NCBI GenBank assembly: GCA_039096225.1
Contig: JBBPEB010000034.1
Coordinates: 558,001 to 622,000 of the forward strand
Length of the DNA: 64,000 nt
DNA from: Blastocystis sp. Blastoise
Taxonomy: Eukaryota > Protista > Bigyra: Opalinata
Direction of reading: 5' to 3'
Under the pieces are notes generated by a model, which saw nothing but the letters and a program-made list of their open reading frames with translations, made no database searches and was not told where the DNA came from. Made by a program: the position numbers and the translations under genes. Within the stretch, counting starts at the first letter, position 1. Every line of letters begins with the position of its first letter. Below are positions 32,751 through 53,100 of the stretch, in pieces.

Positions 32751-33313
32751 ATGTCAACAACACAATTTCGATTAACTGAAGATAAATGTATTTAAATATG
32801 ATTAACAATAACTTGATCTATTTTTAGATTTATTCACTTTCCAAGATGAGACACAATTGTGGATTCAAAAAGAATTTATTGAGAAATATCCTCAGTTTCG
32901 CTTTTATGATATCATTGAACACTCTGAGAAATATGATGATGGTAGTTATTATATAGATATACCTTCATTCAGCATGGACAAAATGATTCATTTTTTAATG
33001 GAGGACTACATTGATATTCTTTCACTAAATTTGAAGGATAGCTATGATATATATAAAACATTTATTAAATACTCAGCTACAATTGATAATGAAATACAAT
33101 GTGATTTATTATTGCATATTAAAGATTTATTCTACAATTATTTGAAAAAAAACAATAATTATATATATGGGAATTATTATAAAAGCATAAAATCATCTAT
33201 GCCCATGGAATTATTTAGTTCCTATAGTACATCAATATATATAAATGGTAATTCTATGATTATTATTTATAAATAATATTATACATATAGGATTATTTAC
33301 ACCTCAATGGAAA
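32751..33313 (+). pseudogene. 5' part of a BTB-like/LRR-like family gene, interrupted by the CACTA element
   Basis: MSTTQFRLTEDK|YLFTFQDETQLWIQKEFIEKYPQ...|GLFTPQWK runs into the TIR (CAC TAA stop). The frame resumes at 50199 after the duplicated AAA. Confidence 0.85.
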
Positions 33314-33330
33314 CACTAATAGGTGATTTT
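33314..33330 (+). repeat. Left terminal inverted repeat of the CACTA element
   Basis: CACTAATAGGTGATTTT. Confidence 0.9.
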
Positions 33331-33719
33331 CTTGGGACTGAAAAAGCGTCAAATGTAAAATTCTCACTTACTTTTTTTAAGACTAATTCAGATTCTCTCT
33401 TTTAGATAGAATTAGCAGTGAAAAAAACTCTTTTTGATTTGCTAGATTCTATAAACTAGCTAATCAGTTTGATCAAAATGAATGGCTTAAAAATATAAGA
33501 ATTTTCTAGAATTTTCTTTATCAATTAATAACAGATTTCCGTTCTTGGTAGTTAAAAATATTATTGACAATCATAATACATTTCTGTTCTAACAAAACGA
33601 TTTTGTACACATTATTACATAATCATACAGAATAATATATAAATATATATATATAACGAAATAAGTCATAATCAGATAAAAATTAAAATGATAAGAATAA
33701 ATAAAAAATTATTGTTTTC

Positions 33720-34696
33720 ACTGTAAACGAAAAAGGCCATCTATATAAATTAATAATAATAATAATAATAATAATATTAATAATAATAATAATAATAACC
33801 AAACGGAAAAAAACATTAACCCATATAATAAACTAATAATAATAATATTAATAATAATAATTATATACACAACCAAATGAAAAAACATTAACCTATATAA
33901 ATTATATAAATTAATAATAATAATAATATCATACATAAGCAAATAGAAAGTCCTAACCTATATAAATAAATAATAAAAATAATAATTATAATAATAATAG
34001 TAATAATAAATATAATAATATACAAAACCAAATGAAAATCGATTAACCTAGATAAATTATATAAATTAATAATAATAATAATAATAATAATAATAATAAT
34101 AATAATAATAATGTCATACATAAGCAAATAAAAAGTCACTAACCTATATAAATTAATAATAATAGTTACTATAATAATAATAATAATAATATTTATATAC
34201 ACAAACAAAAATAAATCATTTATCTATATAAATTATTATTAATAATAATAAATCTAATAATAATAATAATAATAATAATAATATTTATATACACAAACGA
34301 AAGAAATAATTATTTATCTATATAAATTATTATTAATAATAATATATCTAATAATAATAATAATAATAATAATAATAATAATAATAATATTTATATACAC
34401 AACCAAAAGAAATAATTATTAATCTATATAAATTAATAATAATAATAATAATAATAATAATAATAATAATAAATAATATACACAACCAAAAGAAATGATA
34501 ATTTACCTATATAATACCAATAATCGTTATTATTATAAAAGGAATATAATAATAATAATATACATCAATAAATAAAGAGTTATTTACCTATAATAATAAT
34601 AGTAATAATAGTAATATATGATAGGCTATATAATATACTAAACATGAGTGTATTGATTGATAAATCATTGAGAATTGAGTGTGATGTTGATAACAT
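33720..34696 (-). repeat. Array of ~10 related 23-25-nt units, most bounded by AG and GT on the minus strand, separated by (TTA)-rich spacers (micro-exon-like)
   Basis: Examples: tag|GTTAATGTTTTTTCATTTGGTTGT|gtat, tag|GTTAATCGATTTTCATTTGGTTTT|gtat, tag|GTTAGTGACTTTTTATTTGCTTAT|gtat. Confidence 0.6.
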
Positions 34697-49190: not shown

Positions 49191-50178
49191 AATAAATAAT
49201 AATGTCTATATATGACTAATAATAATAAATTAAGAATAAAGATAAATTCACTAATAAAATTAAATTTGTTAGTCAAACACAAAAAAATTTCATGAAAAAA
49301 CGATTTTTAAAATTTTAAATTTTTTTATGATCCACTACTAGAATTACAAGTTTTAACACGTCATGTTCTACACTATTGACACAACACTATTGTATTCCAC
49401 AACTTTCAGCTTTAAAAAAATTATTCATTTTTGTTGACTCTCTGATCTGTTGACTCACTCATCCAGAAACTATTGATTCTAACTTAAAAAGTTTGTACGT
49501 TACATAATTAACTCTAAAAACAACTTTTTAAAAGACTTTTATTTGATTCTGAAGAAAATGTGTTTTTTAATAAACTTTGACATACTTTTTGTATGCGGAA
49601 CTTTGATTCATATTAAAATTTAATGAAAAAACTGTTCTACACCTCTTATGTCCTCTGATATTCAATAAAATATAAATAGACTCAGTTTTGAACGAGAAAA
49701 TTATTCCCGTAAATATTTTAAAAATTCAAAACTCTGGTCTAAATCTCCATGATACAAATAGGCTCGGTTCATTTTTTCAGTGTAAAAAAAAAATAAATTT
49801 TTGACTTTTTGGCTGAATTTTGGTTTCGACTCATAGAGGTCATTTTATTCATTTTTACACACACTTATAACTCTAAGAGGCTCTAAACTTTAAACAGAGC
49901 AACAAAAGGTTTTAAAACATTGACCCCGTTAATTCACAAAATTATGACTTTAAAATAAAGAAAAACGTTTTTGATATTGTGGGACCTTCTGTAAACAAAA
50001 AAAAATGTCAATTCTAAATTAAAAAATGTCTAACAGGGTCTTTGAGTCTAAATCAAAAGTCTACTTAAAATTTTTGTGAAAATTTTATTTTTTTTGCCTA
50101 AGTCTTTTTTTTATTGAATTATTATTGGATGAATAAATTTTGAACGAAAATCAACCAATAAAATTGCCTTAAAAAGTC

Positions 50179-50195
50179 AAAAGCACCTACTAGTG
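50179..50195 (-). repeat. Right terminal inverted repeat of the CACTA element
   Basis: AAAAGCACCTACTAGTG on the + strand, followed by the TSD AAA. Confidence 0.9.
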
Positions 50196-53100
50196 AAAGA
50201 TGAATTATTATATTATTCTCTTCTTATTAAAATGATGAATACTACTGAAGTTGAAATTGAATGTATATATATTCAGTAAACTATAAATAATAATATATAT
50301 ATAGATGATTATGCATCAGATATTCCATTAGAATATATATGTCCATCATGTATTAAAGATATATTCCCTTCATTAAAAGAATTAAAAATAATTGGTATAT
50401 ATATATATTTCATTATATATATATAGTAAATACGCATTATAAGAGAACTGAGATATTATTGAATCCAAATAGTGATGATTATATAATGGAATATAATCGC
50501 TTATTTAATAAAAATGACTATGAAATAAATAATCCTGAAATATATGATTATTATACTGAATCAGAGATGAATGAATATAATAAGATTTCTTCTTCTTTAG
50601 ATCGTAATAAATTATATTATTCCAAAGATTTGATTAATACCTATAATGAAAGAAGAGAAAAGAATGAATTACCTAAATTATATAAATATATAGTTAATGA
50701 AGCTATATATACAAATGATTATTCAAAAACAGAAATCAATAAAACAAAAGATGAATATGCATTAAAAGATGCAGTTACTATTACTTATGATGGTATATAT
50801 ATATATATATATATATATATATATATCACTATATATAGATGAAAAAAATGATAAAACATTCACGTAAATAGTTATATTATTATACTAATATATTACATAG
50901 TATCCTTAGAGTATATTCTAAATGTGGTATATCTCAGTTATTATTTATTCCTTCCTATTTGTCTATTTCCAAAATCATTTTAAATGAATGTAAATTAGTT
51001 TATTTAATTAATAAAATAGTTTATTTAGTTTCTATTTCTCAATATAATATTATGATTTTTATGACATTAATTAAAGAAGGACTTTTCGATTCTTTAACAG
51101 TATTTAGTGTCTACGGGTGGAGTATTTTTAATTATAATGATTATAAATAATTATCATTCTATATAGTTAAGGGATCAATTAAAGGAATTAATGTGAATCT
51201 ATTGAACGAAATAAAGACAACTCATTTATTTCCTAATGTTACTGAGATTATATATGATGATTATATTTATGATAATTACGATTATACTTATAATTATGAT
51301 AATGATTCTTTTGATTTTCAATATAATGATGATGGTATATATATATATAATTCTATATATATATATAGAATTATTCCAATTATCTTCAATAAAGAAAGAA
51401 TATTTTCCTAAATTACATATTATCAATTATAATATTGAAATAAGTATATTTATATATTAATAAATATACAATTATTCTTAATTTAGCTACAAAGAATTAT
51501 GAGTCTTTATTTCCAATTAATATAATGTCTGTGATTGATACTATTCGTATAAATGATATTGATATTGATCAAAAAGAGGAAATAGCTTTTCTTTTGGATA
51601 AACTAGTTTATACTCATTCAATTCATATTGATAGAGTTGATACATATGTTTGTATCATATATATAAAAACTAATGTCATACTATCTAAAAAATCAATTAT
51701 ATTTATTAACTTTTTATATAGATCATTGTATTTCTTATTTTCCACATTTAAATGACTTATTAGCAAAAAATCAAATTATCCTTGATTGTCTTGATAGTAT
51801 GAATTTTTATTTTTTGATTTATTATTTAATATACTTTATATATTATATTTTAAATAGTTTATTCTTCTTGTTCTGAAAATATCAAAATATTCTATTATAT
51901 TGAAAGTAATAAGCAAAATATTGATAGTTTAGATATAGCATTCGGTATTTATATTTATATATAATTGGCAAATTGTTAATATATAATAATAATACTACTA
52001 TTTATTCATGTATAGATGATGATCATGATGAAATTGATATCAAAAATTCATTAGAAAGATTCTTAAAGAGTAGTGTATTAGAACATTTGAATGAGTTAAC
52101 TGTTACATGTATATTTATTATTGTTATAATATATTATTATTCTATGTATACTATTTATAGTTAATTATAATATAAGCATACATTATTTAACATGGATATC
52201 AACTCTTTTTAATGATAATAAGTTTAATACTATTCATGAATTAACGATTAATTGTATATTATATTATAAAATATATGAATATATATATAAATAGTGCGTT
52301 CTATCAAAGAAGATTCATCATCGGAGGCTTTAACTACCTATAAAAATATAGTAGAGAAATTAATTCCTAAGGCTTCTATTATTACAATAAAAGGTAATTA
52401 TTTATATAATTATTTTGTTAATAAAAAATTTACTTTAATTATTTTTAATTGCTATTATTATTAGATTGTACTCTGTCTTTTATAAATGGATTCATACCTA
52501 AAGGTTGTTTCCATAATACAACTCAATTAATTCTAGGTATATCTATTAAATGAATATAATGCTTTACCTATAATATATTACATTTCATGCTAATCTTTTT
52601 ATGAATATTTATTTAGAAATTAAAGATATGCCAGATGATAATTTTTGTAAACTATATACTACAGATAATTTCCCTCAATTAAAACATATCAAGTTTTGTA
52701 TATATATATATATGTTAATAATAATAGTATGTTGTATTATAAATCATATATATTTATATAAAATCTTATCATTATTAAAAATTAGTTTATTAAATTATAT
52801 ATATATAGATAAAGGTAACAGTATAGAATGGTGGAGTTCTTTTATGAAAACATCTTGTACATATATTAATAATAACAACTTTCCATCATCAAGTATTGTC
52901 CGATTAGGTGGTATGTCATCAATTAAATCATTCTATTTATATTCATTAATACTGAATTTCTATAGAATGGTATGATGATTATGATGATGATTATGTATAT
53001 GATCCAAATGCTTCTATCTTTCGATGTAAATATGATACTAATTCATTTATGAATACAATTATTGGTACAAAAGGTATATATTTATATATAATAACATATT

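Follow-up and report, generated by a model that had tools for sequence, protein, structure and literature searches.

A CACTA/EnSpm-type transposon in a split exon of the gut protist Blastocystis sp. Blastoise

CACTA elements of plants insert into exons and knock out genes, and the gene-capturing non-autonomous elements known as Pack-CACTA and Pack-MULE have also been recognized. The En/Spm elements are defined by CACTA termini and a 3-bp target-site duplication (PMC4158355), and a transposase signature consisting of D, D, C(2)C, H(3)H and E has been described (PMC12730594). Here we analyze a 64-kb stretch of the genome of Blastocystis sp. Blastoise, a tortoise isolate of this stramenopile gut protist (contig JBBPEB010000034.1 of assembly GCA_039096225.1, positions 558,001 to 622,000; hereafter, the window, with coordinates counted from its first nucleotide), in which an element with CACTA termini splits an exon of a host gene. 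Very probably, this element is a full-length CACTA/EnSpm-type transposon with two genes; as such, it would be a DDE cut-and-paste transposon from the CMC/CMCT group and a member of a young three-copy Blastoise family. The literature searched contained no link of Blastocystis with CACTA or EnSpm and, going by this literature, such an element had been described in no Blastocystis.

The element resembles plant En/Spm transposons (maize En-1/Spm, Tam1 and Tgm, with TnpD and ORF2/TnpA) not only in the CACTA...TAGTG termini, the 3-bp duplication and the Tnp2-lineage DDE transposase, but also in the two-gene layout, the large size and the insertion into an exon. It differs from them in that the transposase is too divergent for a direct Transposase_21 score, the second open reading frame (ORF2) is divergently transcribed and has no detectable relation to any family, the right subterminal region consists of one long conserved block with no clear repeat array, and the host is a stramenopile. 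Compared with the fungal EnSpm, Plavaka and other CMCT lineages (Kojima 2025, PMC12730594), the window element carries no TET/JBP or other passenger enzyme, and its clade, which may lie within or beside EnSpm proper, was seen only in one Blastocystis genome among 1.84 billion sequence representatives. Membership in the Kyakuja-Dileera-Zisupton (KDZ) group, in which the duplications measure 7-8 bp (PMC12730594), does not fit the 3-bp duplication in the window, and there were no KDZ Pfam matches. With Pack-CACTA and Pack-MULE elements, the window element shares its length and the large amount of internal non-transposase DNA, but it keeps the transposase and ORF2, contains no recognizable gene fragments and has the same interior in its different copies.

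Termini, target site and the split host exon

The limits of the element and the two parts of the host gene are as follows:

33314-33325, plus strand: left terminal inverted repeat, CACTAATAGGTG (sequence match)
50184-50195, minus strand: right terminal inverted repeat, CACTAGTAGGTG (sequence match)
33311-33313: left copy of the target-site duplication, AAA (the host paralogue has a single AAA here)
50196-50198: right copy of the target-site duplication, AAA (single AAA in the paralogue)
32751-33313, plus strand: upstream half of the host gene, comprising exon 1, an exon of 141 aa and 23 nt from the start of the split exon (from the gene call at locus L002)
50199-52972 (3' limit approximate), plus strand: downstream half of the host gene, comprising the remainder of the split exon (up to 50277) plus later exons

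A preliminary description of this DNA, made from the sequence alone, had placed a CACTA element with near-perfect termini and an AAA duplication at 33311-50198. The element is there, but this interval takes in both AAA copies; the element proper spans 33314-50195 (16,882 bp). Its termini form 5'-CACTA...TAGTG-3' inverted repeats that agree in 11 of 12 positions (14 of 16 if extended) and are a unique pair in the window: the pattern CACTARTAGGTG has two matches in the 64 kb, both of which are the termini of the element, compared with a mean of 0.17 matches in shuffled windows and two or more matches in none of 100 shuffles. The AAA duplication is perfect. Furthermore, homology to related CACTA families extends over approximately 40 bp of the left end, as seen at L004 (4617), L005 (6849) and L019 (7256); loci L006, L018 and L020 also contain elements of such families.

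In the assembly, this part of the window is covered by locus L002 (JBBPEB010000034.1:584636-610167 of GCA_039096225.1), which is 100% identical to window positions 30001-52167 and in which the interval 6116-6684 corresponds to 32751-33319 of the window. The product annotated upstream of the element (161 aa, window 32751-33319) ends with ...GLFTPQWKH, the host frame now stopping at a TAA within the left terminus (CACTAA), and the downstream public gene model begins at 50232, the first ATG past the element, such that the two halves are treated as separate genes in the public annotation. Removal of the element together with one AAA yields an open exon of 34 codons (102 nt), GLFTPQWKDELLYYSLLIKMMNTTEVEIECIYIQ, that runs from an AG acceptor to a GT donor (local frame check). 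On the minus strand of L004, we identified a paralogue of the host gene that is annotated as one gene. The amino acid identity between the two is 58% in the 141-aa exon and 53-70% in the exons that follow the element, with the exon order kept. The counterpart of the split exon is uninterrupted in this paralogue (DLFTPQRKDELLYYSLLFKMMN), which reads contiguously through LFTPQRKDELLYYSLL (LFTPQRKDELL) with one AAA, and the left and right flanks of the window element, aligned to it separately, overlap by exactly 3 bases (AAA). Because the L004 paralogue is contiguous and has a single AAA, both the split of the exon and the 3-bp duplication are confirmed. Thus, the in-frame rejoining of the host exon and the contiguous TPQ.KDELL motif anticipated in a host paralogue were both borne out, and the two host halves are indeed undecayed, being intact. 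No Pfam domain was found in the host gene, which is an orphan multi-exon gene; as in the other searches, the queries were individual exons, individual ORFs or database proteins.

Sister copies and recent mobility

The family copies compared here are the window copy and those at L003 (contig 11) and L001 (contig 2). Across these three copies on three contigs, the similarity stops exactly at the termini and the flanks differ, so the additional copies with shared termini that were sought on the strength of the preliminary description exist. The L003 copy differs from window positions 34530-50195 by only 7 changes in 15.7 kb, namely one single-nucleotide substitution, one homopolymer T, two extra 99-bp units and four length changes in microsatellites or minisatellites; its right terminus is identical to that of the window element, and the flank beyond differs. 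The left arm of this copy is not truncated and has instead received an autonomous Helitron. The L001 copy is 94-99% identical to the window element, has the same left terminus with the flank ATA and sits inside a CACTA element from a different family. This outer element has a 99.6% identical sister at L020, where the corresponding site is empty and a single ATA is present. Altogether, the interior of the element is common to all three copies at 94-99.9% identity.

The intact host halves, the perfect target-site duplication and a second copy only 7 events apart in 15.7 kb agree with the recent mobilization that had been proposed from the window alone. Collectively, the sequences are direct evidence of cut-and-paste DNA transposons that are active now or were so very recently in a Blastocystis lineage and that hit coding exons. 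In the mechanism that we propose, the transposase, perhaps with the help of ORF2, would bind the termini and the conserved right subterminal region of about 0.8-1.1 kb, excise the element and integrate it through a cut staggered by 3 bp; the insertion in the window would be very recent and may be heterozygous. A metagenome scan yielded no matches to the empty-site 27-mer and 11 matches to the terminus pattern, all devoid of further similarity and attributable to chance. Blastocystis lacks genetic tools, and the development of insertional ones could start from this apparently mobile element, which is well delimited and has known ends.

Because an autonomous Helitron sits within the L003 CACTA copy, Helitrons have been recently active in the Blastoise genome as well. 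This Helitron occupies L003 1-7894, with the insertion point corresponding to window position ~34527, and combines a gene for a RepHel protein of 2336 aa (Helitron_like_N, PIF1) with a GC-rich 3' hairpin and a ...CGCTAG/T end. A 2.7-kb repeat with A/TC...CTAG/T ends (L001 5089-7790 and 20221-21925+; L004 6899-9619; 92-95% identical) looks like a non-autonomous Helitron; it is present twice within the L001 copy and a further time in the L004 element, where it separates ORF2 from the transposase gene.

Transposase, ORF2 and mobilization in cis or in trans

The content of guanine plus cytosine (GC) in the window is about 20%, and its genes are read with the standard genetic code and contain numerous introns of about 27-56 nt; ciliate or other alternative codes were considered and rejected. 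The ORF statistics did not help to decide, but short introns under the standard code account for the data. Genomes of tortoise Blastocystis with 21-23% GC and sizes of 26-33 Mb have been described in a Genome Research paper, in which assemblies of Nanopore reads from xenic culture were polished with Illumina data and annotated with BRAKER3, and in which the k-mer signal was diploid. This paper likely describes the GCA_039096225.1 assembly, although the name "Blastoise" is absent from it; CACTA elements are not mentioned there, and repeats are given as overall percentages only. The genes of the window element and the two peculiarities of its transposase gene are listed below:

36636-42167, plus strand: transposase gene (mapping of database proteins P0002 and P0003, motifs and profile links)
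38021-40285, plus strand: minisatellite with a 27/30-nt unit present about 79 times, GC about 10%, in frame between C(2)C and DxMH
40864-40870, plus strand: T7 homopolymer (T8 in L003), separating D, D, C(2)C/DxMH from H(3)H, E
34968-35829, minus strand: ORF2, at least 5 exons, with limits approximate after exon 3; conserved in L004, L005 and L006

The annotated exons of the transposase gene begin at 36636, 36906 and 37307, the last one occupying 42057-42164, and the catalytic part extends from 37307 to ~42003. The ORF matches Blastoise database proteins at 98% identity and contains, in this order, the motifs D (TCDG), D (GDxxA), C(2)C (CxRC), DxMH, H(3)H and E (SERFY). In the numbering of P0004, these correspond to D260, D351, C370/C373, H672/H676 and E696, all of which are invariant in five aligned transposases of the family, and the D, D, C(2)C, H(3)H and E blocks align with those of Transposase_21/DUF4218 (true Tnp2) proteins (for this alignment, P0003 was used with the repeat segment cut out). 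The possibility that the catalytic E is missing, with F in DxMHLFNN where plant proteins have E, was rejected because the conserved E lies further on, past H(3)H. A profile built from eight family proteins produced 48 matches among the 1.84 billion representatives. All 20 of the matches that were looked up, in the list down to an expectation value (E) of 2e-12, came from the Blastoise genome, and the next relatives appeared at E >= 1e-11. When ten more distant profile matches were scanned, Transposase_21 was detected in seven, in six of them above the curated cut-off; matches P0033, P0034, P0036, P0037 and P0039 (E 9e-9 to 2e-5) reach 50-250 bits with Transposase_21, and DUF4218 likewise occurs among the proteins that the profile retrieves. 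Word-indexed searches for homologues, started from one protein as well as from a profile, reached Blastoise proteins only, and a sequence search of the PDB with the transposase profile returned nothing. Taken together, the termini, the target-site duplication, the D, D, C(2)C, H(3)H, E motifs and the profile links uphold the assignment to CACTA/EnSpm-type elements with a Tnp2-related transposase, and the element, whose clade has been seen so far only in the Blastoise genome, is a new and very divergent member of this known superfamily.

ORF2 is transcribed divergently relative to the transposase, starts with an ATG at 35829-35827 and includes a 27-nt intron at 35803-35777 and a 37-nt one at 35666-35630. 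Its largest exon shows 40-44% amino acid identity to ORFs located in the same place and on the same strand in L004, L005 and L006, that is, ORF2 is kept in four families, including that of the window. The stop codon that had been read as a sign of decay lies within the 27-nt GT..AG intron and the apparent frameshift is the 37-nt intron, which, along with the conservation in three other families, speaks against this reading. In L004, the corresponding segment of ORF2 measures 33 nt, is GT..AG-bounded and stop-free, and reads through in frame. No Pfam family was found for ORF2, and the AlphaFold model of its core, made with four sequences, was too poor for a fold search (mean predicted local distance difference test score, pLDDT, 56.6). 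We regard ORF2 as a real second gene of the element, and the protein that it would encode as a new conserved accessory protein that the clade brings with it.

Several observations weigh against an autonomous, recently mobile CACTA/EnSpm-type element. The preliminary description had proposed a search of the transposase against Transposase_21 and DUF4218: no Pfam Transposase_21 (PF02992) match to the transposase core was obtained at E up to 10, and DUF4218 (PF13960) scored below threshold in five proteins (18-22 bits vs a cut-off of 27), but these DUF4218 matches (E 2e-4 to 2e-3) occupy the same relative position in all five, and the family profile does reach Transposase_21 proteins. The frame of the window transposase is broken at the T7 run. 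The frameshift noted earlier is thus present in the assembly, but it amounts to a single T7 vs T8 difference; in L003 the exon at the T8 run is open for 571 aa and all catalytic motifs lie in open frames, and the frameshift could be an error in a Nanopore assembly of multi-copy sequence. The minisatellite inside the transposase ORF is present in all three copies, so that self-mobilization is putative. In addition, no gene model has been called for ORF2 in the three family copies, the subterminal repeats are weak, and one complete element of a related family, at L019, has no matching 3-bp duplication (AAT/ATA). Finally, the analysis is based on one haploid assembly.

The alternative that fares best is that the family is defective, owing to the minisatellite and, in the window copy, to the frameshift, and is moved in trans, as the preliminary description had also considered, by related CACTA transposases of the Blastoise genome that recognize similar termini; we hold this to be a possible but unlikely explanation. 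The 2.26-kb minisatellite, which shows a 3-nt length difference between two of the three copies, occupies a position at which the other families have one uninterrupted exon of ~800 aa, and full-length transposase genes of ~1000 aa are present in several of these families. The termini are alike across families (CACTRRTAGGYR), their first ~40 bp being homologous, and the last 794 bp of the window element are 85.4% identical to the L005 family without an indel, compared with 65-70% for the transposase-coding DNA of those families. However, the minisatellite leaves the frame open across its entire length and lies in a linker that is variable between the aligned families, and a GT (38018) and AG (40288) pair could remove it in frame, although it would be exceptional as an intron. 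Furthermore, all catalytic motifs are in open frames in the L003 copy, and the cross-recognition of termini is only putative. A full-length transposon with its own two genes remains the interpretation that we favor. Unlikely, and offered tentatively, is the idea that the Blastoise CACTA families form one interacting system in which the right end of 0.8-1.1 kb (85% identical without an indel, with transposases ~50% identical) would be a shared cis module through which the transposase and ORF2 proteins of one family move elements of other families, including the family with the minisatellite; or else the transposase of this family would still be made, either by tolerating an insert of ~750 residues or by splicing a 2.3-kb intron in an organism whose introns, in the DNA examined, are 27-56 nt long.

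Arms of the element and related families

The remaining parts of the window element are:

33751-34478: (TAA)n microsatellite and 106-bp repeat of the left arm (repeat analysis)
42168-49061: right arm, purine-rich and satellite-rich, non-coding as far as visible
43030-43237: 99-bp tandem repeat of the right arm, with two more units in L003
45564-45785: (AAT)n microsatellite of the right arm
47213-47388: (TAA)n microsatellite of the right arm
49062-50195: conserved right subterminal region, 80.5% identical to the right end of L005 (19862-20993)

The window element had been portrayed as an old composite, laden with cargo, containing two pseudogene blocks and representing a Pack-CACTA-like system of gene capture. 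We found no evidence of either composite origin or capture. The 8-kb right arm contains no convincing ORF on either strand: on the plus strand, there is no ORF of at least 45 aa between 42.2 and 45.4 kb, and the rest of the arm contains low-complexity ORFs only. When the ORFs of the arms were compared with ~200 kb of the Blastoise genome, they matched only other copies of the element, and an Rfam search with the whole element returned nothing. Because the interior is common to all three copies, it is the standard body of the family rather than the product of capture. The origin of the interior from captured and decayed host genes could be argued from the length of 16.9 kb, of which ~9 kb have no assigned function, and from the third annotated gene, encoding an RGG-rich acidic protein, that related families have in the right arm, but with arms lacking gene-like ORFs, both of its own genes kept and the stop in ORF2 being intronic, we consider it very improbable. 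Within the favored two-gene transposon, the long arms would instead be cis-acting or junk DNA enlarged by satellites. The Helitron insertions of the sister copies map in or just past the left-arm repeat (L001, ~34430-34446; L003, ~34527).

The right subterminal region has neither a long ORF nor an Rfam match, and its conservation may stem from constraint on cis-acting sequence, from exchange between families by recombination or from a gene hidden in it. In En/Spm, the second protein binds to arrays of short subterminal repeats; in the window element, no k-mer of at least 8 nt is repeated in the subterminal parts of the ends. In its right 800 bp, the motif GACTC(A) is found 4-5 times vs 0.16 expected, and it is present in L005 too.

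Complete elements of related families were delineated at four loci, with a chance of 0.038 for each 3-bp match:

L005, 6849-20993: complete element of 14.1 kb, target-site duplication TTG
L018, 6856-20971: complete element, target-site duplication TTA
L020, 8206-21029: complete element, target-site duplication GAA, termini agreeing in 12/12 positions
L019, 7256-23389: complete element, flanks AAT/ATA without a match

The termini of these families read CACTGGTAGGCA or CACTGGCAGGCA, and both the left (~40 bp) and the right ends are homologous between families. The sequence CACTAATTAATA, considered as a possible end for the L004 element, was rejected since the similarity runs on beyond it within the 2.7-kb Helitron-like repeat; the true ends of the L004 and L019 elements are CACTGGTAGGCA. 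An ORF is likewise split by the L005 element. The two parts of this ORF rejoin in frame (...KLKAGCI-A-YINNKEIYRYNLP), and a neighboring paralogous domain is unbroken (...SNSGYIVYINGQEVSRVGLP); both annotated halves of this large gene carry He_PIG matches. With the window element included, two of the four complete elements flanked by target-site duplications that were examined split an ORF. In the Blastoise genome, the clade comprises at least 40 gene models that fall into at least 20 clusters at 50% identity. The pattern can hardly be credited to a segmental duplication or a mis-joined assembly with inverted CACTA motifs at its ends by chance, even though the reads behind the assembly were long, error-prone and from a xenic culture: the copies lose their similarity precisely at the termini, the perfect 3-bp duplication corresponds to a single AAA in the paralogue, 3-bp duplications flank four independent elements and the empty site of one nested insertion is known (L001/L020).

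The acidic, RGG-rich, low-complexity gene in the right arms of two related families encodes 513-535 aa (L005 17781-19690, minus strand; L018 17777-19962, minus strand; L004 22444-23841) and is 93% identical between families over 1.4 kb, with no recognizable counterpart in the right arm of the window element. Within the right arm of the L020 element, a DDE_3 (Tc1/mariner-type) transposase gene at 19412-20701, on the minus strand, is probably another nested transposon. The gene models of CACTA transposases are clustered on few contigs, such as WA158_005830-005909 on a 752-kb contig and WA158_006906-006982 on a 532-kb contig, which suggests transposon-rich regions.

Downstream of the host gene, the window contains a TLDc ORF (55044-56540, 498 aa) from a family of at least 250 proteins at E <= 1e-3, most of them ~496 aa long and, among the 120 listed, 42-81% identical to each other. 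We considered whether the host gene itself encodes a TLDc protein and rejected this assignment: the TLDc ORF is a separate gene of ~498 aa, and the 120 family members listed include no match to the host exons. The public model of 1531 aa that starts at 50232 probably fuses the 3' half of the host gene with the TLDc gene. The analysis thus exposes two annotation errors, the split of the host gene into two models and the probable fusion with its TLDc neighbor. Elsewhere in the window, an ORF at 5248-5934 contains 7 MORN repeats (E 4e-42), and the 2-kb segment 14001-16000 stands out by a GC content of 15.5% and a GC skew of -0.47.

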